Of a stretch of 64,000 bases of DNA, positions 5,886 through 60,303 are shown piece by piece; within the stretch, counting starts at the first letter, position 1, and every line of letters starts with the position of its first letter. The stretch is from Syncephalis fuscata S228 (Eukaryota; Fungi; Zoopagomycota): the NCBI GenBank assembly GCA_025786725.1, contig JAHLTZ010000026.1:1-64000 (forward strand). The letters run 5' to 3'. The translations under genes and the position numbers were made by a program. Under the pieces are notes generated by a model. The model was given only the letters and a program-made list of their open reading frames with translations, had not been told where the DNA came from and made no database searches.

Positions 5886-7163
5886 ATTGCTCTTATTGTA
5901 ATATGCCAACGTTTACAAAATAAAAAGTTTTTTAATTTAATTTAATTAATAATAATAATATAGAATGATATTCTGAAATAAAACATCAATTATAAGCATA
6001 AATAAGTACAAAGAATATGAGCCAAAAGGTTTAAATATTTTTTATTGATAACAAAAACGAACAATTATATAAATAGATTTTGTTTAAGTAAAGAATGATG
6101 CTTGAAATGTGAATAAAAGTGCGCAATTACAATTATTGGCATTTTTTGTTTAAATTGGTGTTAATTATTACATTTATACCATCGTGAACGAGTTTTATAG
6201 CAGCAATACAAGCCTACAGATCATTTGTCTAATTTTTATTTGAGCTGATGAATAATACAAAATTGCTTTAATTATTAACATTTACATTTTGGAAGAACTT
6301 ATTCACAAGTGATTAACTGAAGTTACAATGTAGTGTTTTCGTTTTCTTATACTTAATTACAGCATATTGATTGGTGATGTTCGACTACTTGCGTTGTTCA
6401 TTCATCCCAATGACATTCACTGTTCATTTTCATCCATCTTGCTTCCTTTCCACTTAATATCCTTTGTCTCTAGCAGTATCATTGACTAGTACGCACACTC
6501 GGTTCATTTAATATACAATTGTTTAACTAGCTAAATTGAATAACATTATAGCCAACATAAAAGTGCCAATTATACAATGTTCAATGATACAGTATCTATT
6601 TCACAACATTGCATACATTCAAGTCAAATGATATAGTAACGTTGTTATATACAATCTATATCGTTCGTGAATAAGCAGTAATTTAGTAGTAGTTTGTGTT
6701 AATCAAATGGCGACTTTATTAAGTAATAATGACTACATACTAATTGCTATTTAAATAACAATGCTATTACAATCACTTTAGTTTACATTGTTCACTAACA
6801 TAGCGTATTTTTACAAGTATATTGTCAATATATTTAATCAATTAATGTTAGTCTTTGTAAGCAAATAGAATATAAACATAGCTATAATAGCTTAATCAAA
6901 CACAATTAAGATGGAACCACATGTTTATTACTACAAGTTTGCATACTTGATTGTATACAGACAAATACAGACTTGTTGGTAATATAAGAAATCCATCGAT
7001 TAAGGGTTGAATAAACCAGGGCATTGGCTGGGACTTGGTAGCTGAGTGGGCTGAGTGGTGTAGTTGTCAAATGATCTTGATTCTTGCCGAATATATACCT
7101 AAAATATATATAACTCGCAGTCCAATCATACTATCAGTGCCAATATTTTGAATGCGCCAGTTA

Positions 7164-9045
7164 TTCTATAGTCATGAGCACATATAAAATATTATATGGT
7201 TAGCGTATGAGTTAGCATTATATGATTCTACTTACAATCTATTAATACAAGGCATCAAACACGTAAAGTGTACAGTATATATTTAATGCATCGTCAATAA
7301 TATACAGTATTACTTACGAGCTATTAATACAAGTCATCAAACACAAAGAATATGATGGTTGTTTAACGTATAGCCAATTAATATACAATGCCACTTACAT
7401 TCTATTATGTTAAGTTATTGATAAGCACAATACAAGTATATAATTAGTGTATAGCCAGTTAATATACAATACCATAATTGTTAAGTGAAACCCCCCTCCC
7501 TGTTTTTTAGGTAAAACAATATGCAAGCCAGTTTAAACAAGTAGGTCCAAAAACAAGACCTTGGCCAGAATAGCCAAGGAAAAACAATTAGGACCAACTT
7601 CAAGAGAATAGTGCTGTGTAGCACCATTCAAAAAAAGATGGTCCCGCATGAGATCTATATGGACCGGATTTTGCGCAAAAACGTAGCAGTCCACCCGTTA
7701 AAAGTTTGGAAAAGTCCAAAAATAGTGGGAAGCAGCGCAAATGCTTTAATTATGTGCAGCGGGGGCTCACAAGCTTTTCAAAATAAAATAAAAAATATAA
7801 TATAATATTACTTACTGCCTATTAATAAAAGTCATCAAACACGCAAAATGTACGGTATGTATTTAGTGCATAGTCAATTAATATACAATAACACTTACCC
7901 TCTATTAATACAAGTCATCAAACACGTAAAGTGCACGGTATATGCTTAGTGTATAGTCAATTAATATATAATACTACTTACGACCTATTAATACAAGCCA
8001 TCAAACACACAAAATGTACAAATATGTTTAGTGCATAGTTAATCAATATATAATGCCACTTACCAACTATTAATACAAGTCATCAAACGCAAAAAGTGCA
8101 CAGTATATAATTAATGCATAGTCAACTAATATACAATACTACTTACAACCTATCAATACAAGTCACCAAACACACAAAATGTACGGCATATGTTTAGTGC
8201 ATAGTCAATCAATATATAACATTACTTACCAACTATTAATACAAGTAATCAAACACGCAGAATGTACGGTATATATTTAGTGCATAGTCGAGCAATATAC
8301 AATGTCACTTACAAGCTATTAATACAAGTCATCAAACACGCAAAGTGCACAGTATATATTTAGTGCATAGTCAATCAATGTACGATATCACTTACGAGCT
8401 ATTAATACAGGTTATCGAACACACAAAGTGCACAGTATATATTTAGTGCATAATCAATTAATTATTACTATTGCTATTTACCTCCTATTAATACGAGTAA
8501 TCGAACACACAAAGTGCACAGTATATATTTAGTGCATAATCAATTAATTATTACTATTGCTATTTACCTCCTATTAATACGAGTAATCGAACACACAAAG
8601 TGCACAGTATATATTTAGTGCATAATTAATTATTATTCATATTGTTATTTACCTCCTATTAGTATAGATAGGCAATGTTAGTATCAGCAATATAATTTGT
8701 TTTATATTAAACCTACTTTTAACCAATGGTGCTATTTTATTTGTTTTACATTAAAAACAACAATTAATTATTATGCCAATAACTATGTGCAATCAACAAT
8801 TACCATCTATTTGCCATGTCCATTATTTGGATAACATACGATAAGCGCTGGAATAATGAGTCAATAATTGCGACTTACCATCTAATATTATCGTTGGTTA
8901 AACATAATGTTAGCAAACATTTCAAATTTCAAATTTATGACTACAACATACCACGACGAACCAAAGTTGGCTTAGCATCCACCATGGCTGTACTGGCTAC
9001 AAGGGCCACGAGGACGGTGCAGACGACGGCAATAAAAAGCTTCAT
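7164..9045 (-). CDS. Micro-exon secreted peptide gene, locus A (52 aa: MKLFIAVVCTVLVALVASTAMVDAKPTLVRRDDAPLVKRGGAPFGFGQGKSH)
   Basis: Exon 1 is 9045-8952. 3-nt exons ATG 8881, ATG 8806; a 15-nt exon 8731-8717; then 3-nt exons starting at 8655 GAG, 8570 GAG, 8484 GAG, 8398 CTC, 8315 CTT, 8232 TTG, 8149 GTT, 8066 TTG, 7984 GTC, 7901 AGG, 7818 GCA, 7401 AAT, 7320 CTC, 7238 ATT. The last exon starts at 7165 (AA TAA). All are flanked by AG and GT. Confidence 0.8.
7166..8716 (-). repeat. Tandem array of ~82-86 bp units, each one intron plus a 3-nt exon (locus A)
   Basis: On the plus strand, (C/T)TTAC-NNN-CTAT recurs about every 83 bp with a shared core TTAATACAAGTCATCAAACAC...TTAGTGCATAG. On the minus strand this reads GTAAG...TAG. 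Confidence 0.92.
7475..7800. mobile_element. ~330-bp insertion inside one intron of locus A, possibly MITE-like
   Basis: Breaks the 83-bp period between exons 7818 and 7401. It is more GC-rich and has imperfect inverted ends GTGAAACCCCC (~7485) and GGGGGCTCAC (~7770). Confidence 0.45.
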
Positions 9046-9182: not shown

Positions 9183-9190
9183 TATTTATA
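9183..9190 (-). promoter_or_regulatory. Candidate TATA box of locus A
   Basis: TATAAATA lies ~140 bp upstream of the ATG. Locus B has TTTAAATA at the homologous position (60449-60442) within an alignable upstream block. Confidence 0.5.
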
Positions 9191-9418: not shown

Positions 9419-10165
9419 CAACCTGTTTGGCTTTTGCTCAGATGACGCGGCGAACCTAACCACCTGGTACATCTATGGTAGAAATTTGTGTACTATTCTT
9501 TACAATATCGTACATGGTTTGAACATGTAATGCAAACCAAATCCATTGATTCTATAGAAGCAATAATGATACGCCTTTGTGTTCTTGCTATTGCTTTTAC
9601 CGAAAAATTAATCCCCAACTTGACCGTAAGATGCAAACTGAAACAACTGGTTCTACAAAAATAATGATGCTCCGTTGTTGTTTCTTTACTTTAACCTGCT
9701 TACCATTTGCACAAAGGACCCGACAATCTCAATCATTCAGTACACCTATGGTAGAAATTCGTGTACTATTCTTTACAATATCGTACATGGTTTGAACATG
9801 TAATGCAAACCAAATCCATTGATTCTATAGAAGCAATAATGATACGCCTTTGTGTTCTTGCTATTGCTTTTACCGAAAAATTAATCCCCAACTTGATTGT
9901 AAAACGCAAACTGAAACAACTGGTTTTACAGAAATAATGATGCTCCGTTGTTGTTTCTTTACTTTAACCTGCTTACCATTTGCACAAAGGACCCGACAAT
10001 CTCAATCATTCAGTACATCTATGGTAGAAATCCATATACTAATATTTACTGCACTATGCATGATTTGACCATACAATACAAACTGAGTCTATTGGTTCTA
10101 TAGAAGCAGTAGTAACACAACAATGTGTTTTGCTGTTGCTTTTACCGAAACATTTTAATCCCCAA
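9419..10165. repeat. 273-bp tandem repeat (~2.7 copies) upstream of locus A
   Basis: CTATGGTAGAAAT recurs at ~9473, ~9746 and ~10019. The near-identical ORFs at 9577 and 9850 are 273 bp apart. Confidence 0.88.
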
Positions 10166-14272: not shown

Positions 14273-17200
14273 TTAATACCATGGCATCCATACACAACTC
14301 ATTTGTGCCATCTTTTGTGGATTAGTTGCTTGAGCAATGAGATCCAGCAATGATTGATCTAATGGAACAATTTCACTAGATGCTACCGGTTGATCCTCCA
14401 GTTCCATGGCATCAGTATCGGACGCAGCTGCAGCTGTTCCAGTATTAATACCATTAACGTTGGCATTAGAAGCAGATGCTTGGTGTGTAGATGTTGTAGC
14501 TAAATGTTTCCATGCCTATTAATGACAGAATATTAGCAAATTAATAGATTAATAGAGAGAGTAACCTACCACATCTCGTTCTGTACGACATGCTAATAGC
14601 TGTATTTTACGCATCAATTGTCCTGTTGCCGCTTTAGCAGCAATGATGGTCGTGTGTCGTTCAGTTGACATATCATCTGATGTATCCATTTTGCCTTCAC
14701 CTCTCTCTTCTGTATCCATAGCCGTGGCCGTATCATTATCGTCATTATCATTATTGATCTTTGGCACTTCTGATGTACCACTCTCTTCTGCTTTATCGGT
14801 CACTTCTTGCGTAATAGCATCAGTCTCTGCTGCTGTAGTATTTGCATCTTTATTTGCCGTCGAATGACCACCTCCAGTCATTGTTGCCGATGATGCTGTA
14901 TTATTCCACGTGTTCAGTTCATCATAAACAAAAATATTTAATAAATCCTCGACTTCCGTCTACATGGATTATATTAGCATTCGTCATTTAACAGCCATTA
15001 TAATACAAACCTTTGATTCAACAAATGCATCGGCAATACATAAAAGTGAAGTAGCAAATACGCCTTCAAGTCCATTAGGTGTCATGAAATGCTGTAGATT
15101 GGGTGTCAATCGGAAAGGTACCGGCTCAGTAATATTGAAATCTTGATCTAATAAACCATATCGTATTAATATTGATGTCCATAAGTTAATAAATAAATAA
15201 GTAACTTACTTGGGAAGAGTTCAGCCGTCCATATATTGCCAGTGGACAATGAAACATGGTACTTGTGTGGATGACGAGCGTTAACACCAAGTACATGAGT
15301 TAGAAAAGTGCTGGTCGCCCATTGAGCAGTGAATCGTTTACGTAACATCCATAGATCGGCCGGTGTCTTTTGACGTGATGAAAAGTAACGAGTCAGTGTA
15401 TCAATTGGTACAAGTGTATTGGCGATAGATTCGACAATCTCGTGTTTAATACTTGGTATCATTGTTTTATCGTCACCAGTCAGCTCAGTAAGTAATTCCA
15501 AGTATTTAAAGACCGGTTCATCCACTAGAACATCCTGTCCATTTAACTGTGTCTCCAATGCTTCATGGAGTGTAACATAGGATGGATCTAGTTGTACCAA
15601 ACGTACTTGAGGGGCCAATGGCACAGTAACCGGTAGATGGAACTGTAATGAACGTCTACGTGTTTCCAAACGTCTTTCCAGCACACTGAGTTCAACCATA
15701 TTAGTGTTATTATTATTAATAAAATATTATTATACAGCTTACCCATTAAGTAGTCTAAATAGCTGCAATAAACGTTCTTCACGACGGCAGAAACGTGGAC
15801 ATGGATGTTGAATCATAAACGGATGAACTGTTCCATTATGACCACGCATAGCAATATGTCTAACAAAACTTGCTTGTTGTCGAATAGTAACTACAGTTGG
15901 TTCAAATCGCTCAATTCTTACAAAGTCATTATTATTATCCTTTAACTAGTAGATTCAATATTATAAATAACTATTACACTTAATAATACTATCTCTACTT
16001 ACTAGAACATATTGTCCCGGTATTTCTACATCATCGAATCGTTGATGTTCAAATTCAGTTAAATAATGTGAATAACTTTCTAGAGGTAATTCCGTTGGTC
16101 GTTCAGCCATCATGGCCACAAATGAATCGCGCCATTCACGTAAACGACGTACATATTGTGGCAGTGTTGGTTGATTCTCTACAAAATCACGTGCAAATGC
16201 CGTCTATACGATATTGATTATTAAATGACACCATGTAACTGCTATTCGCATACCTTTAATTCACCCGATGGTAATATGTCAGCAATACGTTGAATATTCG
16301 ACAATGAAGCAGTTGATAGAGCTGAATCTTTATCGTTATGCGATAAACGTGATGCCAATTGCTATATAACTGTATAAATACCTTTATAATATATACACTA
16401 TCAATAACTTACTTGAATACCATCGGTTAATAGTGCTACCAACAATCGATACATATCCTCTTCAGAAGTTGGCTTTAATCGAGCCAATATTTGATCAATC
16501 ATCGTTTCCATGGTTAGTGCCAGTAATGGATTAGTTGATTTAAGTATTGACATAATATCATCAAGATACTCCCATGGATGCTCACGCTGTAGAACATTTG
16601 TTGTTTGATTTGAAGTAGCTGCCAATGTTTCTGATGATTGCGATAAAGCATTGCCACTATTATTGTCTTTAGCTAGTGCTCCATCATCATCATCATCTTT
16701 ATCTACTTCATCTTTAACTGCATCATCTGTATCCATCATCATAGCACTGTCATCTTCTTTAATAAATCCAGCGGATTCAGCTGGTGTCGCCTCACTTGTT
16801 TCTGTGTCTGTAGCCGTATTTCTTGATAACAAGGTTGTTTTATCATCATTTATGCCATTAAATAAATTTATATTCTTGGATAGATTATTCATAGATGAAG
16901 ATGATTCAGCTGTTAGTGTTGTTGCAGCAGCAGCAGCAGTTGTTGTTGTTGTTGTTGTTGTTGCAGTTGTTGCAGATACAGAAGCTGACGTTGAAGGTGA
17001 TGGTGATACTGATTTTTTACGGGTGGATTTGGCCATTGATGGATTTCTACGTAAAACCATTTCAAATTCTTCTCTCATCGTCCGTAGTTGATAATGCAAT
17101 GCCTATTAAATACATACATATTAATAACTATACCTATAATTAATAGCTATCTAAACAACTTACTTGTGGGAATGATTTGGCAATACGCTCAAGTACTAGG

Positions 17201-20200
17201 CGAGCATGTCTAGCTGTACGGCTTGATAGTTGACTTAATAATTGCGGTATAAATGTAAGCCAGTACCAAATAGCCACATCACCTTTAAACGTTTCAAACG
17301 TTTTGGCCACTGTGCCCTGCTGATCATCCGAAGCAAGTAGCCATAGAATGCGTGCAATATGGCGACGTGATTTAGGACTACGTTGTAAGCAACATGCCTG
17401 TAAGTAGCAGTCCATCGCTCTACTAGCATATTCAATCTGATCAGGATGGTGCTGGAATAATCCATCCAAAAATCGGCCCCAGCTTGACCATGCTTTGGCC
17501 AAACTAAGATCGGCATTTGTGGCGGCCGCATAAGCAACATTTGCCTCATCGTTGCGTTCAAGTCGGGCTAGAAAATCACCTTTTAGCGTAAAGAATTCCG
17601 CCTTTTGTCGTACACCAAAATAGGCCAGATTCGTATTATTAATGACCTCAAGTCCAGAGGTCAATTCGCCCAAGTTCTTTAAATTACACCGTGCCTGTTC
17701 TTTCAATTTAATAAATGCTTCGTGAATTTCAATATTGGGCAGTGTGTAGATACGGGCCAGTTGATTAGTGCACACATCCAGCATGCCATGTTTACGTGCT
17801 ATTCTAGCAAATCGATTAATCATCCAGGCCATTTCATGATAGCCACGATAGGCGAGTGAACTACCCGCCACACCACTCGTCGCAGCATTATTAGCCGTAA
17901 CAGTCGGTGGCAATAATGGGCCCAGCGGTAAAAAGGTACGATTAACGGCACCAAACATCAATTGACGCCATGATACTAGATCACTCCATCGATTCATATC
18001 ATCCCAGTAATTGGGCAGTCGTTCACGCCATGACTGTAGTAGTGCCTTTAATTCTTGGAATCGGGCATCAAAGTTGTTGGCATTGGTGTCGAGTAATAGT
18101 GTACACATTTGACCGGCCTCTTGTAATTCAACAAACATTTGAAATACATGTAGCAACGAAACATGTGATCGATGTACGATAGGCGGTAATGAACGCCATT
18201 GTTGTAAGGCCAATTTCATACCATCGGCACACAATTGATGAAATACACTGGATCGATCTGGTTCACTTACACCACTTTCCTGTAATAGTAAAAATGCTTC
18301 CATACCCTTACGGCGTGGCGATTCAGGTAATACACGTAAACATTTGACCATCGATTCGGCTTCAAATTGTGGACTATCCATTTGACGCCATGCAGCATCC
18401 AGTTGAAGAGCTGGATTGTTTTCATGACGGGCCAAGTCATGTAGAATATCCCATTGCTGTAACTGTTCCGTTGTACGTATCCAATGCTCTTCCCATAGTG
18501 TATACTCGGCCTCAGTAAACGCTTGAATACCGCTACGGGCCTTTAATTGGGCTTGTTCGTACATTTGTTGTGCTACCGGCCATACACTACACTGTTCAAA
18601 AGAAAGTGCATTATTCGTTTCACTAAACATACAACGACGACGCCATAGTCCAAACATTAAATCATCTTCTGATAACTGCGTGTATAGTTCAGTTAGTGCA
18701 TCCAGCGTACTTTCACGTATTAATTCTTCACTACGATTCACTTCATCTAGACCATTTGTATCCATCGAGTGGCCATGTTCAAGATACTCAACGGCAACAT
18801 GCCATGCACCAAAATGTTTAGCAATGTACTTAACAAGCTGTGGTGGTAATCGAACAGCCGGTTGACATAGTGCAGCCGCTTCTAGTAATGCCTGCGGTAC
18901 ATTGGGACGTATGGCCGTTTGTTGCGACTGATACGGATTGGCCAGAAGTGGAATAAGCGATTTTGTAATATCGGTACGCTCTTTAGTCGACAATAACGGC
19001 CAACTATTACTAAATAATTCAATCCATGTATCATAGGCTATGTCATTGTTAAAATGTAACAGCTGTTGTAATGGTCGAATAAGATCAATAAGTGTCAGTT
19101 GACGTAGTTCAGCCATTAATTGGCATTGTTGTTCGACAATTTGCTGTAATGATGTATTTTGTTGCGCATTAGTCGCTATTTTAGCTGTCACTTTAGTTGT
19201 CGTTGTACTATTTGGTAATAAATTCGATAAAGATGATAGTGATAGAATACGTGTCTGGCTCATTAATGGTGCTTCTGGCACAATACCTGCTAATAGTAAA
19301 TCACAAGCTTGGGTAATCCAGAACTGTTTAGCAATAGCATCCCAGTGCTGTACACCTATTAAATAATACAATCGTGGGTAAAGACCACGTCCAGCACTTT
19401 TATGAAAAATAGTGGCAAATCGATTACGTAATTCTGGTTCGTTGAAACAAAGACCGGTAAGAAAGGCGTGTTCTAATCGTACAGTTAATTCAGTACGTGC
19501 AAATAATGGATTTTCATAAATATCAACGACCAATCGAAGGAATTCTTTCATTAATTCACGGTCTTGTCGTTGATCCAATGTCATCAACATTGACATTAGA
19601 TTGGCCTTCTCCTTAGTCGTGGGGAATGCTTCTTGATCATCTTTAATCCATTCGCGTACCATAGTAAGAATGGCCCGTAGTAGTTCTAGATCGGGTGACT
19701 TCTCTATTAACTGTATAAGTGATACGAGTAACCAGCGACGTTGATCGCCCAAATAAGAGACACGTGATTTGAGTAGACGTAATAATAGAATAAGTGCCGG
19801 TACTAAATGTTGATATTCAGGTGATGCTAAATTGGCCGATAAAAGCGATACTGAAGGCATTGTTGTACTGGTAGGACTAACAACAGTCGATAGTGGATTA
19901 CTACCGCTGACTGATATCAACTGAATATGCTCTTTAGTTAGTTTCTGTAATAGTTTACTAAGTGTTGGAATGAAACTATCTAGATATTCTGGTCGTGATT
20001 TACAACATGCTTGTAATAGAATAAGAGCAGCCCGTAAACTTTGACTATTAATACTAATACTTGAACCAAGTGTAGTTGAACCACCATTTGTATTACTGCC
20101 AGTAACAGTACCGGCACCACTCACACTACCGGTACCAGCACCGCCTGTTGCACCACTACTCGTACCACCCAATCCTTCTTGTAAAATAGTATCAATGGCG

Positions 20201-23200
20201 GCATAGAAGGTTGCCACTTCAACTTGAGCCTCATCTGGTGATGGAAGATGAGCGTATAATCGCGTAAGAATAGGAGCCATTGGTTCGCATAAATCAAGAC
20301 GGCCACTTGATAATGCTCGATTAAGTAGTCGTTGTAATAAAGCAATATTTTCAGTAAGCCAATTTGTCGGCTTTCGCTCTAATACAAAATCAAATACTTG
20401 AAGTGCCGCCCCTACACCTGCTACTTTATCTTCTTTAATTTCATCCATATTAGCAACGAGGACTACTTCTAAATAACGTAGATTAATGTCTACTGATTGC
20501 CAAGTAGACAGTTGCATTGCTTCTTTAAGCAAATGTAACGCTCTTGATGACATGTTATTAGGTGTAGCCGATGATGATGATGATGATGATGGTGGTGGTG
20601 ATTCAGCTGTAGCACATGTAAATTGTGCCAAATAATTAAGAATCATTTCTTTAAGCGTAGCATTTGGCGTATATTCATTAGATGGAATAGTTGGTGTAAT
20701 CGACATACTATTCGTATCATTACTATCTGTATCTTCACTTGGTAATGATGCTAATAGTTTCTTCTCCCATCCAAGCATTGTTTCTACTTGATCAAGGGTA
20801 AGTGCACGTGTCTCGGCCGTGGCAGATGGTACTAGTCCAAGTTTCGGTAATGTATTGACCATTTGAGGTAGGAAATATTCACGACAAGCATAGAATTGCT
20901 CAGCATGTCGCACGACTAACTGGTAAATATTGACAAGTTGCGATACGGTGTGGCCATCTTCAATAAGTACTTTACGGGTGTAGCGAGCCCATGTAGGAAA
21001 TCGATGATGATCACCAGGAGCATTGGCTAATCGAGTAGGCAGGGCCGGTGTAAGTACATCTAGTGCTTGTTTTACCAAATGCTTCGCCTCCGATTGATGC
21101 GCACGTAATAGAGCGACAAATATTTGATTAATAATCTTGGGCGGTGTTTCGAATGCTGCAATAAATCGAGCAATTAATACGTAGGCTGCTTGTTTACTCG
21201 TTACATCTTCTAAACGAATATTACCATAGGCGAATTTAATAACATCTTTTCGCATCAATATACGCTGTGGTACATATTGTACCATCATTGCTGTTAATTG
21301 CAATAATTCAATACGTAATGGGTCACCGAAACTCGATCGATCAGCATTGGCTGGTTGATCGGCTAATGGACGCCAGATACGTGTCTGTATCTCTTCGAGT
21401 GTAGGGGCATCCAGTATTTGATCAGCTTGTTGACGTACAAAAGTCGAAAGTAACATCGGATTCACTAGAATACGTAAGGCTTGAGTGCGTATCTCTTGGG
21501 TCTCCGTTAAATGAGCACTATTACTGGCGGATGATTCAAATAAACGTAAAAATCTACGTAAAATGGCCCGTTTACGTTCAGCTGTGCCACGAATGGCCAT
21601 TTCATCACACAAAAATGTTTGTAAAAAGGAGAAATCGACTACACTAGGCGTGGTAAATATATCCAATAAATCAAACAGTAAATCAACTTCATCAGGTACC
21701 CTCTGGCGTAGATCATTAGTGTTTCGGCTAATAAGCGTGATTCTTGTAACCGATGTAGATTCATATGTTCTTCTTGTTGTTGAATACGTATACGGCGAGC
21801 AGGTGTACGCCATAATTCAAGTAATCGATCTACTAAGTCACGATGTTCAACTAGCCATTCTGGATGTACAATACATAATTGATGTACAATAAGTACAAAT
21901 TGGAATCTAACTTCATCTAAATTGGCGCTATCATCGACGGTGGATGGAAATGCTCGAGCAATTAATCGGTCCGGTGATCGAAGCAGTTGCGATCTAAAGG
22001 CCGTTGCTTGTTCCATACCAAGTAGTCCAAGGAATAAGCGGCTCATAGCTGGTTCAGCCAATCGATTTAGGAAATAATCGATTGATTCAGAGGCATATCG
22101 ATTAAGGAATTTGATTAACGGTGCTCTAAATGGACTCGATGCATCTCTACGTAGCATTAATTCCATACGTAATGTTTCAGTTACTAAATCATTAAGGAAT
22201 ATGTTTGATGAAGCTGGCAATAAGTGAAATACATTCATAATAGCCACAATAATCTGCACTTCATGTACTTCAGCAAGCGATTTACCCGCTGCTTCCTGCA
22301 TTACTTGAGGATCGGCCCAACTCTTCATATGATCAAGCAATTTGTTGCCAATTTCTACTTTAAAGTAGCTAATTAGTAGCTCAAGTAATCGGGCCAGTCC
22401 CTCAAGGCCCGGCACCGTTAATCGTTTATGATCGGATAGATTATGTAGAATGGGACGTAGACCGGTTTGTAATAAATCTTTGGGTAATCGATGCTGTTGG
22501 GTAAGTACTTGTTGTAGGCCTTTCTTCGCTGCCTCTACCACTTCAGATGACTTGTTATAAAGTGATTTAAAAAATACTGAAATGATACGTTGTCTAACGG
22601 TACTTTGTCGTGGGGTAAAGAAGTCGGAACACGTCATGGCCGCCGATAGTAAACGTATACAAACAACACGTAAATTGACCAGAGAGGCCGCATTCTTATA
22701 CTGAGATGTACGACTAACAAGTGCTTGATCATCGGCATCGGCCAATGCCAGTGCTTCATGTAATAAACGCAGTAATTCATCATTACACTGTAGGAATGGT
22801 GGTCGTAATGATAAACAATAGGTAACGGCATCAATATTGCCAATTTGCATAGCAAATGGTAAAGCACGTAATGGTTTAGTGAATATAGGCCGTAATAATC
22901 GTTCCCGTACTGGATCAAGTAATTCAGTCACTTCGCACCCAGTAAGATCGGCGAGTAATTGGAATGAGGATTGAATGGTGTCACGTACGGCTGCGTTGGA
23001 ATTCGATAATTCAGTAACGAGTAATCCAACAAGATTGGTAAACTTTTGTTTACGCTCGGCATTCGGTTCACCTTCATCGGGTCGATTACATACTTTAAGC
23101 ACATGAGCTAGTGTTTGAGTGGCTTCTTCAACACCGCTAGTGGATAGTTCAGGTGATGCATCCTTGAGAATATACAGTAAAGCTTTACAGAAATCAAGTT

Positions 23201-26200
23201 CATGCTCAGCATCCATTGGGAGCCAAGATCAAGTTGGGCTGTTAATAGTGAAATACCCAGGCAGCCACCTCGTTTACGGAACCATTGTTGTGTATAACAG
23301 CAGGAACAGAAACGCATAGCCAATTGATGAAAGAATGGAATACGAACGGCCAATTCACGATCTGCATCTGTAAATGGTCCATCGGGTGATTCGGCCACAC
23401 AGTAGAGACAAGTACGATAGAATAATTGAAGGGATGATTCAGCCAAATTACGTAATTCTGTATCTTCATCAGTAATGACTCGAATTAACGTTTCAACAAA
23501 TACACTTTTATCAAGTTGAGTCGGTAATGATCGAGGACCAAATGGACCACCCAGCTTACCACTGGAACTACTCGATGCTTTCCCACTGTTGCTAGTAGTA
23601 TTGACGTCTACATCCATATCTTTATCCGATGATGTATCATTAGATTGGTCATTTAAACTTGATGATTTAGTAGTTGTTTGCGTAACTAGTTCTGCTGCAC
23701 TTAATAAAGCAAATTGTTGCGTTATTCGATCCAACATCGTACTTGCTCTATCTCGAAGCGATTTAGTGGCTGCACATCGAAAGAGTAAAAAGAGTAGACG
23801 GGCCAATTCAGCCTCTTGCGCTTGTTTAATGCGCTGCTGTTCACTATGATTGACTAGTGATGTAGCTGGTAATGATTTACTGGCCGTTGTTTCTACTGTG
23901 TCATTAGTTGAATTACCCGATTGTTGTGATGTTATTCTTAGCGCATCTGTTAATTTATGTGGATTGATGTTGGCATCTGATGTATCAAGCAGTAAAGATA
24001 GACAGCTGCGAATGAATAGATAGGCTTGTTCAAGACTGTGTTCACTCGCTTGTTGATCATCCAAAACAGTTTCTGCTACTGATATGTATCGTTCAATCGA
24101 TAAGGCTAGTCGAATATCATCGGGAAATAGCAGTTCAACGTTAAGTCCACTATCACTGGCTGGTCGGTACGAAAGTACTGGTGGATTAAGTAATAAACGA
24201 CGATTACGGCCGCCTAATTTACCTAGAATCCGCATTGTAGATTGGCTATATTGTTCATTTGTCGTATTAGACTGTAAATGGCTCCACAAAGCACGCATTA
24301 AATCATCAATGACCGGAGCCATAATTGGATCGAGAAAGTCTTGGGTCAAATTGTCAATACACAACTCGAGTGTACGTAATCCTTGGCTGATAAGTTCTGA
24401 ACCAGCTTGTAAGGCAATAACGAGCGGCTTCATAAGGAATGTAAGATAGGGCAATAGTACACTAAGTCGTACAGGTACTGTTAAACAGAGCTCAACGAAT
24501 AATTCACGCATTTCTTGTTTATGAGCCAGTGACAGTAGCGTGTTAAAGCTTTCCAATAGCATTTGCACAAGTGGCAACACCTCTTTGTATAACAGTTCAA
24601 ATCGACCACCACCAATATAGCGAAATAGTGACCGTAATAGTAGGAAATATTTTACGGGATCCTTTGCTTTGGCAGACATTTTCATACTTGACATAATAAT
24701 ATTGCCTAGATGTGGCTGTAATACTTCTTCATTCTGCTGTGGAAACCATGTTACAGCCATAAAGGCAAGTTTTAATAAGCGTAACATCGCTTCAGCACAC
24801 GTAGAATCTGGTCCACCCAATTTATCCAGACGTTCAACCAAAAAGTTAATTAAAATGCCCGAGAAGCTATGTGATACTGATTCATTGGCCAGGAAGCATC
24901 GAGGCACCGCTAGGATGGCTGAATTACCAAGAATACGTTCAAATAAATACGGCATTTGTGCAGTAAATACTTCTTGAAAGATTGCTGGATCAACGGTAAT
25001 AAATACATTGGCAAATTGTTCAAGCGTTTCTTTTTCTTCCTTTGATACTGGACGTGTCCATACGTCTGATATGGCTGATGTAGAAGCTGAAGATGTAGAT
25101 GATGGTAGTGTAGTTGAAGTAAATGTAGTCGTAGTAGAAGATGCAGTGGCGGGTAAACAAGTAGGCAATGGAGAATGAACAGTGGGTGTCATAGCAGTGG
25201 CAGTGGCAGTGGCGGTATTTGCCGTAGCTGTAGATGACAGAGTAGAACTATTTGTATTGCCTTCAGCAATTGACAATAAAGTTGCATCCAATACGTAATA
25301 GTCAAAACAGCGAATACCTTCATGGAATAAACGGCTGAATACGGCCATTTCTTCATGTGAAAACCCAACGGCTACATTGGTATTAGTAACAGCATGGGTG
25401 GTGGTTGTTCCTGTTGGGTTAGTGGCACTAGAGACAGATGGACCCGTTGAGGTAGATGCTGATGCAGGTGGATTTAATGATTTTAATCCAAACATAATAG
25501 TTTTTAATCCTGTAACTAAATTACGGAATAAAAATCGCATATCTATTGATAGATGATTAATATTATGGCATTAATAATATAAAGTGGTACCATCTACCTT
25601 TTAATGTGTCTAAATGACTTTCATTAGACGCTGCAGGTACAGCAATTGATCGATGTGATAGTAAATCTGCTTCAGTTTCTTCAATTTCTATCTTTTTTGT
25701 AAAATCAACCTCCATATGATCGTCAGTTTTGTTTATAGCTGAAGTATCGCGTTCATGTTCCATTGATTTTGAAGAAATTGTTAATGCTGTTTCTTTAGTA
25801 TCTGATTTACTATTAATACTAGAAGATGTTGTTGTTGAACTATTAGAATGAGCCGTAGACAACGTTCTCTAACAATTGGAAATTGAGAATTAAGGGTTTG
25901 GAATTTGTTTGTAAATGTATCAAGTATACGCATTAATAATTGACGACCTATAAATACATAGAATTAATTATTATTCCATTATTATTACTATAGTTCAATT
26001 TACTTACCTTCATTTCGATCTGGTAAATGCATAATACATTCAATAAGATTTAATAGTAATTTGGCACACATTGTCTGAATACTACTGGCCAGCGTATTAT
26101 CGTGCAGGTTACGAGAATACATATATACAGTACGTGACAATTGTGGTAAAGCTAGTTTGGCCCGTACATGATGTACAAGATCTGCCAACATACTGAATGC

Positions 26201-27670
26201 CAATGGTCTATATACATTATACTATATTAATACTCCTAATATAATATTAATCAATTAAAACTTACCGTAGTGTCTCATGAGAGGTGACACCTGTGCCAAT
26301 AAGTACTTTTTCATTCAATAGAATATCCATATGATCAATAAAAGCATTACGGAAATCTGTTGATAAAATATGACGAGTAGCCACCAGTAATTCCTATACA
26401 ATATTAAATTAGCTGTCTAATATCGACATTAATCAAGACTTACCTTGCGTGTAGAAGATGCTTCAGGTGGACAATCTCTTAATAATCGAATAATTGCTTC
26501 TGGAATAACTGATTGATATTGGCGAAGTTGCGCTGCATATCCGCGTAATATATAGGCCAAGAATGAAGCAGTCTAAATAGTGTTAATAGTTAGATGTCTA
26601 TTACTTATTACTATAACACTCTTACTTTAACTTGGGCTATAATGAATTCGGTGTAGACGGCACGATTTTTAATCGATGGACTTACTCCTACAAATACTTC
26701 ACCGCAAGCCGCAGCTGCAGCATGTGCTTCAGTTTGAGGTTTTGCCTGTAAACTAAGCATTTCCATAATAAGTGGAACAAATGATTGGATATTGGCCGCA
26801 ACAGAGCGACGATGTGGTTGAAATAGTAATACCACAATAATGGGACACTCAGTTAACACTTTAAATGAGTGCATACCACGAGCAAGTGATTTGGCAGGTG
26901 CATCACCAAAATCAGCTGGAGAAGATGGACGTGGTGACATTAACATCATCGAACCTGGCTATTTAATACACTTTATATTAATATTATACTATACTATATT
27001 AATTAATTACTTACTGTACCGCCACTTGTAGGGGCTGGTGTACATGGATGATCGAATGTATCAGCCACGGCTTTTGGCATATGACGATACATTTCCATAA
27101 CAATATTAAGAAATGGTTGTACATGTTCTTCAAGTAGTTCCTTATAAGTTCGATGTAGATCAATAATGATCTTTAAACATAATACGGCATTCTCTTCATT
27201 CTCTACTCGAAGTAGACGAAGTAATAAAGCCATTAAATCAGAAGCATGTTGAGCCAAATCGTCATTATGAGGGAATCGATGAATAATCTCCAGTATTGTT
27301 TGTCTTAATCTCTAATATTGTATAACTATTAGCTAAATTTATCTTGTATTATCTGTTCACTTGCCTGTTCTGATGCATTACTACTAAAGGCCGGTTGTCC
27401 ATCGCGTAATATACTGGTAAATACCGGTAATAATAGTGCTAAAAACCGTTTATATTCGACCGATTGAAATATTTCAACTTTATCGCGTAATTCGGTAGCG
27501 ATAGTCACCTTTAATTTAATATCTATGTCAATGATTAATAAAATGGTATAATAATAAGAAGAAGATGTCAAGTTAGATATATTAGTACAGGCTTAAATAA
27601 ACATACCAAGGTGAGGATCGGCCAGTCGCGTTGCGTAAACCTCGCAGTCTGGCACGGTTTGTGCCAGCAT
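14273..27670 (-). CDS. TRA1: Tra1/TRRAP, the PIKK pseudokinase scaffold of SAGA/NuA4; multi-exon, with two apparent 1-nt frameshifts (~23210, ~21700)
   Basis: HEAT repeats with [12 protein letters not shown] and [13 protein letters not shown], a FAT region ([17 protein letters not shown]), a PI3K-like domain ([12 protein letters not shown]) and a FATC end [21 protein letters not shown] at 27670 (MLAQTVPD). Confidence 0.96.
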
Positions 27671-32879: not shown

Positions 32880-33919
32880 TTATTTTTGTGGTACCTCTAC
32901 ACCTAGATGTTCACCGACGACACAGTCGGAAAGTGTATTATAAGTAGCACGGGCCACCAAGCTGTGGCAGTAGTCTCTATCGGCCGCCGTGATGACAACG
33001 GTCATTTCGTCATCATCGTCGCCGCCGTTGTTGCCATTGTCGTTCTTGTCGTGCTCGTTGTAGTAGTTATGCTTTGGCTCCTCCTCCTTATAAGGCTTAG
33101 TTTCGTGCGATTCTTCCTCATGGTATGGCTTAGTTTCGTGCGATTCTTCCTCTTGATATGGCTTAGGTTCGTGTTTCTCTGGCTCACTGGTTTCTTCATA
33201 AGGCAGCACACCAGCTTCATCTTCATCCTTGGCCTTCTTGTGATAGTAGTAGCCGTATGAGTGCTTTGGTGAATGTTTAGGATGCTCCTCCATCGAGTGT
33301 TCTTCATATGGTAGAACACCAGTGGGTGGTGCTGTCTCTTCATACTTGGGCTCTTCTTTGTATGGCTTTTCCTCAGTCTTTGGCTTTTCATACTTAGGCT
33401 CTTCCTTGTATGGCTTTGGCTCTTCTTTGTATGGCTTTTCCTCAGTCTTTGGCTTTTCATACTTAGGCTCTTCCTTGTATGGCTTTTCCTCCTCCTTGTA
33501 TGGCTTTGGCTTTTCATATTTGGGCTCCTCTTTGTATGGCTTTGGCTCTTCTTTGTATGGCTTTTCCTCCTCCTTGTATGGCTTTGGTTCTGGAGCTGCG
33601 GTCTCCTCATAAGGAAGTACACCTGATGGATTTTCCTGATTATACAAATCATCCTCAGGCTCTTCATTATGTGGCTTTGTGTTATAATAGCCAGATTTAA
33701 CGTTAGTCTTGTGGACTAGGTGGTTATCTTTGGTTACTGAAAGCTTGTGGGCTGTTGGTCGTGCAATTCGGGAGACTTTGGCTTTGCCATGATGTTGTGG
33801 CAGTGCTAATTTGCAAATATGTCAGTAAAATGCTTAAATGTGGCTTAGTTATAATTACCCGTGGCACTTAACGCCGCCATGACCACGATAGTTGCAACAA
33901 ATAAAACATATTGACGCAT
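32880..33919 (-). CDS. Secreted repetitive Lys/Pro/Tyr/Glu-rich protein (KPYKEE repeats), probably a cell-wall or adhesive protein
   Basis: Signal peptide MRQYVLFVATIVVMAALSA at 33919, intron ~33859-33807, an apparent 1-nt frameshift near 33675, then KPYKEE(E/P) and GVLPYEE repeats and a 2-Cys C-terminus. Confidence 0.7.
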
Positions 33920-35310: not shown

Positions 35311-36040
35311 ATGTATATTCAATAGCCTGCATCAATAGATAGTAAGTAAAACTGTGTATTGACTATCCGCTCTAAACATATACCATGCATCTTGTATGTT
35401 TGATATCTTGTAATGATAGATCGTAAGCGACATTGCATATTGACTGACTATGCGCTAAATATATATATCGTGCATTATGTGTATCTAATAACTTGCATTA
35501 ATAGCATGTAAGTGGCATTATGTATTAGTTTTCATACTCTAAACACGTAGCATTCAATGTGCGTGTTTATTTTTTATTAATAGCATGTAAGCGGTATTAT
35601 ATATTAATTGTTTCTATACTAAGCATATATCATACACTGTTTGTGTCCTAATATTTATATTACCAGTCTGTAAGCAATGTTATATATTCCTGATTTATAC
35701 ACTAACTAGATGTGATATGTTGTGCATATTCATAAACACAGTCTAACGGGCTTTTCAAGGCATTGGTATTGGCAATGTGATTAGACGACTAGTTTGACAC
35801 ATTCCAGCTATACATTCGGCAAAACTCAAATCCATTGGCAATTGCCGTTCAGTCCATTCACATATCAAATTTTTAGCAATATTTTGGTTTATCCGCTTTC
35901 AACCAATAGCGCGATTATATTACTGGCAAACCTGCATTCAATTGTACCTATTCAACTATGCTAGCTTGTAGTAATAAACATATGGTTTTATTTTAGCTAT
36001 AATTGACTGAGTTTTCACAACCATGTTTACGGTTTATTTT
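35311..36040 (+). pseudogene. 5'-truncated inverted copy of micro-exon locus B (last five 3-nt exons, final exon and 3' UTR)
   Basis: Reverse complement of 57628-58357, near identical from 35326. Exons ATA 35339, ATC 35420, CAT 35505, CAT 35584, TCT 35667, and final TC-TAA at 35742. No signal-peptide exon is seen upstream. Confidence 0.88.
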
Positions 36041-57921: not shown

Positions 57922-60303
57922 TTAGACTGTGTTTATGAATATGCACAACATATCACATCTAGTTAGTGTATAAATCAGGAATATATAACATTGCTTACAG
58001 ACTGGTAATATAAATATTAGGACACAAACAGTGTATGATATATGCTTAGTATAGAAACAATTAATATATAATACCGCTTACATGCTATTAATAAAAAATA
58101 AACACGCACATTGAATGCTACGTGTTTAGAGTATGAAAACTAATACATAATGCCACTTACATGCTATTAATGCAAGTTATTAGATACACATAATGCACGA
58201 TATATATATTTAGCGCATAGTCAGTCAATATGCAATGTCGCTTACGATCTATCATTACAAGATATCAAACATACAAGAGGCATGGTATATGTTTAGAGCG
58301 GATAGTCAATACACAGTTTTACTTACTATCTATTGATGCAGGTTATTGGATATGCATAGTTCATATCACATGGTTAGCGTATAGTTAATTAGTAGACTGT
58401 GTCGCTTACTAGCTGTTAATACAAGTTGTTAAACACACAGATCGTATAATGTATGCTTAGTATATAGCTAGTGAGTATACAATGCCACTTACAATCTAAC
58501 AATATAAGGTATTGGCCATACACAATGCATGGCATGTACTTAGCATGTAATTAGTGAATATATAATATCACTTACTAGCTATTAATATGTGTATTAAATA
58601 CACGTGGTTCATGGTATGTGTTTAGTATATAGGTAGTTATTATACAAATACACTTACAAACTATTGATATAAATTATTAGACACGCACAATGCATGGTGT
58701 ATGTTTAGTATATAGTCACTAATATACAATGCCACTTACTCCCTATCAATACATATTATTAAATATACATGGTGCATGGCATATGCTTAATATATAGCTA
58801 TTGCATACACAATGTCACTTACCAGCTATCAATACAGGATGTTGGGCATTATATGCCATGTCATATGTTTAATGTATAAATAAATGATATACAGTATCAC
58901 TTACGAGCTATTAATACAAGTTGTCAGACACAAACAGTGTATGGCATGCGATTAAAGTACAACTCGTTAATATACGATTCACTTACAAGCTATTAATCAA
59001 AATGATTGAACACACACGATACATGCCATATATTTAGTGTATAGTTAGGTAATGTACAATGCTATTTACCATCTATTAGCACAGATATTGCACACACACG
59101 CAATGTATGATATATTAATATTGTATAGCTAATTAACATACAATATCACTTACTTTCTATCGATGCAAATTATTAACCATATAATGCACGCCATTTTTTA
59201 GTAGATAGCTAATAGTATGCAATGTCACTTACGAGCTAATAATCCAAAGTATTGACCACATATGGCACATAGTATATGATTAGTATATAGCTATTAGTTA
59301 TAGAGCACAACTTACGGGCTACATTGCAAGTTATTAAACACAAACCGTGCATCTTATGTGTTAGTATTAGTTAATTAGCATGAAATGCCACCTACTGGCT
59401 TTGATACAAGTTGTTAGACACGCACAGTGCATAAAATATGTTTAATTTTATAATTAGTTAATACACAATGCTATTTACCATCTAGTGACATAAGATTTGA
59501 ATTATTGTAGCACATTTCATATGTTCAGCACATGGCTGACCAATATGGGATGCCACTTACCAGCTATTAATACAAGTTGTTAAAAGTTACAACACATGTC
59601 ATATAGTTGGCGCATGTCTAATTAGTATACAATTCCGCTTACCTCCTATTAATAAAGTCATTAGAGATTACATCACATGCCATATATTCAGCACATGGCT
59701 GCTTAATACAAATACTACTTACCAACTATTAATACAGGTTGTTAGGCATAAACAGTGCATGGCATGTAGTTAAAGCATAGATAGCCAATATACAGTTCAC
59801 TTACAGGCTAATAATACAAGATATTAAACATATATGGTGCATGGCATGTATTTAATATGTAGATAATAAACATACACTGCCACTTACATGCTATTAATAC
59901 GAGTTAGTAAACACACATCATCACATAGCTTATGCTTAGTGTATAGCCAAGTAATATATAGCGCTACTTACATTCTAATGCTGTTTTATTAAACGCACAC
60001 GTTGCATGATATGTGTTTAGTGTATCATTAATTAGTATATAGTTATACTTACCCACTATTGATGCAAGTTATTAGACATACAAAATAAATAGCGTATAAT
60101 TAGCGCATAAATGATTAGTACATAATGCTACTTACTTTTTATTAGTGTTATTTAGTAATGTAATAGCGTTTAACTAAATGAATAACTATCTTTTGTAATG
60201 ACAACATACCGCGACGAACTAGGACTGGTGTAGCATTCACCATGGATGTAGTAGCCACAAAAACTACAATGATAGTACAAACGGTGGCAATAGAAAGCTT
60301 CAT
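57922..60303 (-). CDS. Micro-exon secreted peptide gene, locus B (MKLSIATVCTIIVVFVATTSMVNATPVLVRR-[EM or V]ESSFGADATPQNASPGISNSNNPSFF)
   Basis: Exon 1 is 60303-60210. 3-nt exons start at 60138 AAA (acceptor reads AA), 60055 TGG, 59974 AAT, 59890 CAT, 59807 CCT, 59725 TTG, 59645 GAG, 59563 CTG, 59481 ATG, 59398 CCA, 59318 CCC, 59235 CTC, 59156 AAA, 59072 ATG, 58989 CTT, 58907 CTC, 58825 CTG, 58742 GGA, 58660 TTT, 58578 CTA, 58495 ATT, 58412 CTA, 58329 ATA, 58248 ATC, 58163 CAT, 58084 CAT, 58001 TCT. The final exon starts at 57926 (TC TAA). Confidence 0.82.
57927..60209 (-). repeat. Diverged tandem array of ~80-85 bp intron plus 3-nt exon units (locus B)
   Basis: TAC-NNN-CT recurs on the plus strand with ~82-bp period. 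Intron interiors are diverged while the splice dinucleotides and the 3-nt spacing are kept. Confidence 0.92.

Follow-up and report, generated by a model that had tools for sequence, protein, structure and literature searches.

Locus A, encoded on the reverse strand of the 64,000-nt stretch of Syncephalis fuscata S228 DNA analysed here (the window), appears to be expressed and to belong to a large group of related secreted-peptide precursors of Syncephalis, in which nearly every residue of the cargo comes from its own phase-1 3-nt exon placed between homologous introns of approximately 79 nt. To this explanation, taken as a whole, we assign a probability of about 0.6.

Exon organization of locus A

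Re-reading of the sequence bore out the exon map of the preliminary description, in which a leader exon of 94 nt precedes sixteen exons of 3 nt and a single one of 15 nt, with AG and GT ends flanking every exon. As had also been noticed, exon 1 is 94 nt long both in locus A and in its paralog in the window, locus B, and the donor GTATGTTGT is common to both. Introns are 61–83 nt long, with the exception of one of 414 nt that carries an insertion, and all the micro-exons are in phase 1, each triplet supplying the last two positions of a codon and the first position of the codon that follows.

A TATAAA box (9185–9190, reverse strand, as are the exons given below) is found 145 nt upstream of the ATG, a position that is the same in the paralogs L006, L031, L035 and L043. 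Further upstream, a tandem repeat of 273 bp is present in 2.6 copies at window 9467–10165. Coding exon 1 (8952–9045) carries the 24-aa signal peptide, the KPTLVRR pro-segment and one additional nucleotide, as read from hydropathy and from at least 150 homologs. Two ATG 3-nt exons follow, at 8879–8881 (the L031 counterpart, CCG, is joined to exon 1 in RNA) and at 8804–8806 (RNA joint 8486/8804). The 15-nt exon (8717–8731), whose letters are found between the two sides of an RNA joint and agree with L031 at 14 of 15 nt, encodes most of the second pro-segment (APLVK). The three GAG exons (8655, 8570 and 8484, within 8482–8655) are also covered by an RNA joint, and the introns downstream of them are 90–96% identical, the three units being the outcome of a recent tandem duplication. 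Eight 3-nt exons (CTC, CTT, TTG, GTT, TTG, GTC, AGG and GCA, 7816–8398) are arranged in intron-plus-exon units of 82–83 bp, and the last three (AAT at 7401, CTC at 7320 and ATT at 7238, within 7236–7401) are placed by the model, no locus A joint for them being present among the RNA matches listed. The last exon (6924–7165), identified by RNA depth and by one RNA piece that begins at 7165, contains the end of the stop codon, the 3' UTR and an AATAAA signal at 6929–6924. The stop codon itself is split, with T at 7236 and AA at 7165–7164. An alternative last acceptor is present at 7130, use of which would extend the product by one Leu. In alignments, the usual acceptor of the family corresponds to that at 7165, and in L031, where a 33-nt deletion removed the 7165-type acceptor, the equivalent of 7130 is used instead.

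The insertion in the 414-nt intron is a 5'-truncated copy (7470–7795, forward strand, ends approximate), devoid of the head, of a SINE-like element of approximately 410 nt with a tRNA-like A-box head, an A-rich tail and a target duplication of 9–16 nt. The element is found antisense at the same place in the (long) micro-exon introns of locus A, L036, L039, L045 and L049; 23 of the 41 copies listed are antisense and at most 4.5 kb downstream of a listed leader, with one in the sense orientation.

Predicted processing of the precursor

The modelled product of 52 aa consists of a 24-residue signal, KPTLVRR, DDAPLVKR and a 13-residue cargo. It agrees with the joined product initially proposed, down to the second KR, which exists only across the junction between the 15-nt exon and GAG. 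The signal peptide, as judged from hydropathy and a rule of thumb, has a hydrophobic core and a VDA site. Signal peptidase would cut between VDA and K, and a Kex2-type kexin after LVRR; in the subfamily of locus A, a further Kex2-type cut would follow the second spacer, xxPLxKR, freeing a 13-residue Gly/Phe-rich peptide, whereas most paralogs would instead free a disulfide-stapled helical hairpin. The second dibasic site, to which the preliminary description had drawn attention, is conserved across paralogs, the spacer or a near variant preceding differing cargoes in L031 (APLAKR), L033 (QLLAKR), P0010 (EPLAKR) and P0019 (VPLAKR); the cargo of L031 contains a third dibasic site. Leu is at P4 of both dibasic sites of locus A, a residue that suits Kex2 at this position, and one kexin-type P-domain is encoded in the genome. 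Cleavage by Kex2 at these sites is a prediction, and a sound one, from the sequence.

Three labels that had been attached to the family at the outset find no support. KEPs (KEX2-processed repeat proteins) are required to contain internal repeats, the pipeline by which they were defined asking for three or more (PMC6339444). The two LVxR pro-segments of locus A echo each other; it has no other internal repetition, and its single cargo is not repeated, so that the label does not hold. A RiPP is not indicated either, with no match in the genome to UstYa, the tailoring protein of dikaritin-type RiPPs (PF11807, UstYa/DUF3328, in a search in which the controls were silent too), and no tailoring genes seen beside locus A, and nothing points to a pheromone.

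Transcript evidence

RNA evidence comes from one public run (X1), guessed to be RNA, in the form of contigs only and with depth summed over paralogs. With this summation over the family, depth is 7 × 10^5 on exon 1 and 1 × 10^5 to 3 × 10^5 on the last exon, falling to 473 below 6927; in the short introns it is mostly 50–1200, and 5 × 10^4 on the inserted repeat, values that are again sums over paralogs. Four sets of junctions could be assigned, none of which is contiguous in genomic DNA. The first contains the predicted junction, with the second ATG, the 15-nt exon and the three GAG exons joined in an RNA-type contig (depth, 207) that retains both flanking introns and that fits locus A or its near-identical second copy, L032, equally well. 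The others belong to L031: exon 1 joined to its first 3-nt exon, with intron 2 retained; two neighbouring 3-nt exons, with the downstream intron retained; and the last six micro-exons (the first of them partial) joined to the last exon. From these four sets it follows that 3-nt exons are included and that introns are not removed in a strict 5'-to-3' order. Among the X1 matches listed there is no fully spliced contig specific for locus A. The joints 7984/8396 (low depth) and 7981/8233 could not be assigned and were kept out of the evidence on skipping. An intronless member of the family was also found in run X1.

The family in the S. fuscata genome

A search of the S. fuscata assembly (29.4 Mb, 371 contigs) with the leader of locus A gave 150 scored matches among 331 candidates, and the leader of locus B brings further ones; haplotype duplicates may inflate these counts. 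Of the 30 top leaders, 26 precede arrays and the other four belong to intronless genes with the same Cys pattern. A strict 3-nt-exon pattern gave 2,016 exact matches, against one for the reversed control. In 27 parsed locus records, partly redundant and drawn from approximately 30 family loci analysed in all, 617 of 667 internal exons are 3 nt long and 655 are multiples of three, with a median intron of 78 nt; the twelve remaining exons were left as they are, some of them looking misparsed, others resembling homopolymer errors or pseudogenes. In 14 non-redundant in-frame models, no stop codon occurs in 393 exons (19.4 ± 3.3 in exon-order shuffles) and 22 CX3C pairs are observed, against 1.7 in the shuffles. 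A Pfam scan of exon 1 and of the intronless members gave nothing above the cut-off, the best match being TIL (E, 0.018). The layout escaped the public annotation: the model P0004, for the second copy of locus A, runs through intron 1 and yields a wrong protein of 50 aa.

Locus B (57922–60303, reverse strand) comprises 26 3-nt exons, and its cargo is without Cys and rich in Ser, Asn and Pro. Two further copies are 97% identical, and a leaderless copy of its last five micro-exons and 3' UTR is found at 35321–36040 on the forward strand (718 of 720 nt identical). One protein encoded in the window clusters with KAI9595494.1 of S. fuscata. Elsewhere in the window are a retrotransposon integrase-like ORF (149–1168), a large multi-exon gene that by eye is Tra1/TRRAP-like (16401–26949, reverse strand) and an ORF with Lys/Glu/Pro/Tyr-rich repeats of the KPYKEE type (32880–33647, reverse strand).

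Cargo types and fold

Most family cargoes have approximately six cysteines in two clusters, as do those of the intronless members, and most members are thus predicted, from sequence and modelling, to encode six-cysteine, alpha-hairpinin-like peptides. The structure model of the cargo of the intronless L021 is a helix-loop-helix (pLDDT, 85), its best fold matches (nigellin-1.1, VBP-8 and the Jug r 2 leader) being weak and below significance. The CX3C-Xn-CX3C motif and the hairpin fold of the paralogs are absent from locus A, whose Gly/Phe-rich cargo of 13 residues is of a cysteine-free minority type; the value of this locus lies in the RNA support for its predicted junction. The initial picture of the family stands for the constant leader and variable cargo, but it had missed the Cys-rich helical hairpins of the majority and the intronless members. 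That the cargoes of locus A and locus B are dissimilar is correct, and the same applies to L031, the Cys-free, low-complexity cargoes of the three loci being mutually unrelated. A likeness of the locus A cargo to insect FGL-amide peptides was dismissed as chance.

Origin of cargo variation

Comparison of locus A with L031 supports the proposal of a constant leader with a varying cargo: exon 1 is 100% and the upstream 150 nt are 98% identical, whereas 24 of 51 aligned micro-exon bases differ, against 13.5% of intron positions, with the reservation that the alignment of units in arrays is uncertain. When units from different genes with approximately 90% identical flanks are compared, 72% of the exon bases differ, which is near random. 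A unit in intron 1 of locus B (window 60157–60143, reverse strand, coordinates approximate) has AA in place of AG at its acceptor and is apparently a dead 3-nt exon, and in L033 the donor of one unit reads AT. Contig C57 carries a second, near-identical version of both locus A and a protein next to it on C179 (57 columns differ over 3.1 kb), which suggests two haplotypes or a segmental duplication; the eight-exon stretch of locus A is identical in the second copy, L032, where the introns differ by 1.2%.

In the mechanism that we propose, the exons would be included constitutively and diversity would arise in the DNA, with units of intron and triplet that duplicate, die by splice-site mutation or exchange between homologous introns, so that single residues of the cargo would change while the leader stays fixed. 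The exchange of triplets is the hypothetical step, and positive selection on triplets lying between homogenized or constrained introns could look similar without any exchange. Tentatively, and with less confidence than in the overall explanation, a genome-wide codon-cassette system may be envisaged, made up of thousands of homologous units of intron and triplet. Recombination or gene conversion between the flanking introns would swap, add or remove individual residues, and would do so in secreted peptides numbering in the hundreds; a system of this kind would have arisen independently in ascomycete HET/NLR genes. If true, it would give a mycoparasite a fast diversifier at the DNA level.

Diversity might instead be generated at the RNA level by alternative skipping of 3-nt exons, with many isoforms per gene. 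This has precedents in Tuber nank genes and in Schistosoma MEGs, and both the 655 of 667 parsed internal exons that are multiples of three and the existence of partly spliced intermediates are in its favour. However, skipping would break the fixed Cys spacing, and all four assignable junction sets fit full inclusion, although contigs drop rare variants and this argument is weak. Furthermore, when one to four exons are skipped, stops arise as often as under the null, and of 360 single skips only 140 delete one residue cleanly. Selection for tolerance of skipping is therefore not apparent, which favours constitutive splicing with change at the DNA level, and the skipping reading is considered unlikely.

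Equally unlikely is that the arrays are a tolerated by-product, the intron-plus-triplet unit having spread by tandem duplication in the manner of a minisatellite without conferring an advantage, with selection acting on the peptides only. Introns are not needed for function, since peptides of this kind are also encoded by intronless paralogs, and such paralogs, with the same promoter and Cys pattern, are transcribed. Similarity is higher between neighbouring introns (0.77) than between those of different genes (0.70), as expected from such a spread, and the SINE-like element exploits the introns. Against it, the layout has been kept in two species whose introns diverged, it is retained by 26 of the 30 top members at a cost of approximately 80 nt of intron per residue, and in contigs from soil similar arrays occur next to HET and NACHT-ankyrin genes.

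Probable role

Members of the genus Syncephalis parasitize zygomycete fungi by means of haustoria, and the peptides most likely act on the fungal host or on microbial competitors, a role that is inferred only. Rather improbably, and somewhat more so than the two preceding alternatives, the genes would be real but their products would serve the fungus itself, either as signals (pheromone-like) or as structural peptides (of the spore or haustorium wall), or the second KR of locus A would be left uncut: the very high summed RNA depth and the low-complexity, mutually unrelated Cys-free cargoes of locus A, locus B and L031 would fit, but hundreds of divergent cargoes are better explained by an arms race than by one signal, the X-Ala/X-Pro dipeptide run and the repeats of alpha-factor precursors are absent, and the second site is conserved with an aliphatic P4. 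That the arrays are a non-coding minisatellite is ruled out by the RNA junctions and the shuffle tests.

As precursors of secreted peptides, the genes expose a largely unannotated secretome of a poorly studied parasite. They also represent a natural system in which the spliceosome joins 15–50 consecutive 3-nt exons, so that the lower limit of exon size and the order of splicing become open to direct tests, and, with the intronless paralogs as built-in controls, the effect of exon-intron structure on the speed of peptide evolution can be tested as well.

Relatives and soil contigs

A profile search matched 17 proteins; of the ten looked up, nine are from S. fuscata and one (RKP23980.1) is from S. 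pseudoplumigaleata. The contig of the latter encodes the same leader, followed by 34 phase-1 3-nt exons for a four-cysteine peptide, with introns that are more diverged. Among named proteins, homology searches, for which exon 1 and intronless paralogs served as queries, gave no homologs outside Syncephalis.

A pattern scan of metagenomes returned 120 stretches, many of them simple repeats, and 34 with variable triplets. The latter are mostly best read in phase 0, three are beside HET or NACHT-ankyrin ORFs, and the Syncephalis leader was not found in the 34 array loci examined. In soil contigs L087 (2415–7815), L069 and L078, arrays immediately follow a PNP_UDP/ankyrin ORF or immediately precede HET-domain ORFs; those beside HET and NACHT-ankyrin ORFs resemble the Tuber nank layout and are candidate exons. 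L053, L063, L064, L079, L094, L144 and L148 contain up to 50 identical GGA triplets between splice-like signals at a spacing of approximately 72 bp, either an exon run or a satellite. L082, L095, L101, L111 and L160 are very AT-rich (GC, 0.16–0.24), carry variable 3-nt exon-like arrays at a spacing of approximately 90–100 bp and are from another eukaryote. The soil contigs suggest that arrays of codon-sized exons have a broader distribution among fungi than would be concluded from the one report on Tuber.

Comparison with known systems

A search of the literature, thin on subscription papers, found none on this Syncephalis family. In Coprinopsis, 3-nt exons are rare (27 in 26 genes). The nearest fungal parallel is that of the Tuber nank genes, which are reported to have codon-sized mini-exons with runs of tens of 3-nt exons (PMC4986451, PMC13449251). 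The two share an expanded fungal family, runs of 3-nt exons and a link with biotic interactions, but nank genes encode intracellular receptors of an ascomycete with alternative splicing as the diversifier, whereas the Syncephalis products are secreted, belong to Zoopagomycota and have the whole cargo in phase-1 micro-exons, with no sign of skipping. NACHT and ankyrin domains of the nank type are not found in locus A, a 52-aa precursor with no Pfam hit for exon 1.

Schistosoma MEGs (approximately 35 genes) have exons of mostly 15 nt, introns of 0.1–5 kb and alternative splicing (PMC10526429). With them the Syncephalis genes share a parasite origin, secretion, a constant signal peptide, mostly symmetric micro-exons and a tendency to be missed by annotation, and locus A has, as MEGs do, a signal peptide and a coding region made up mostly of short exons that are multiples of three. 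The family is set apart by its gene layout, with at least 150 genes, dibasic pro-segments, exons of 3 nt (617 of 667) rather than mostly 15 nt, and homologous introns of approximately 79 nt (median, 78 nt) rather than long ones, and a relationship to MEGs in sequence is not to be expected. As to the isoforms of MEGs and nank genes, the junctions seen here fit full inclusion, in contigs that cannot show rare forms.

At the level of the product, the family majority shares with alpha-hairpinins and vicilin-buried peptides (nigellin-1.1, 2nb2; VBP-8, 6o3q; PMC7191063) the CX3C...CX3C spacing and the helix-loop-helix, but fold scores are weak (Foldseek E, 2.2; VIA Z, 4.6–4.8), the locus A cargo is without cysteine, and the likeness is probably convergent. 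KEPs (PMC6339444) are similar in signal peptide, dibasic sites and release of a short peptide, which for locus A is predicted, but each Syncephalis gene carries one cargo with no repeated core, and variation is between paralogs. The layout of locus A works like that of a MEG or a nank gene, but the locus is a member of neither class. What is new is that, throughout a large family of secreted products, every residue of the whole cargo has an exon to itself, splicing apparently being constitutive and diversification apparently taking place in the DNA.
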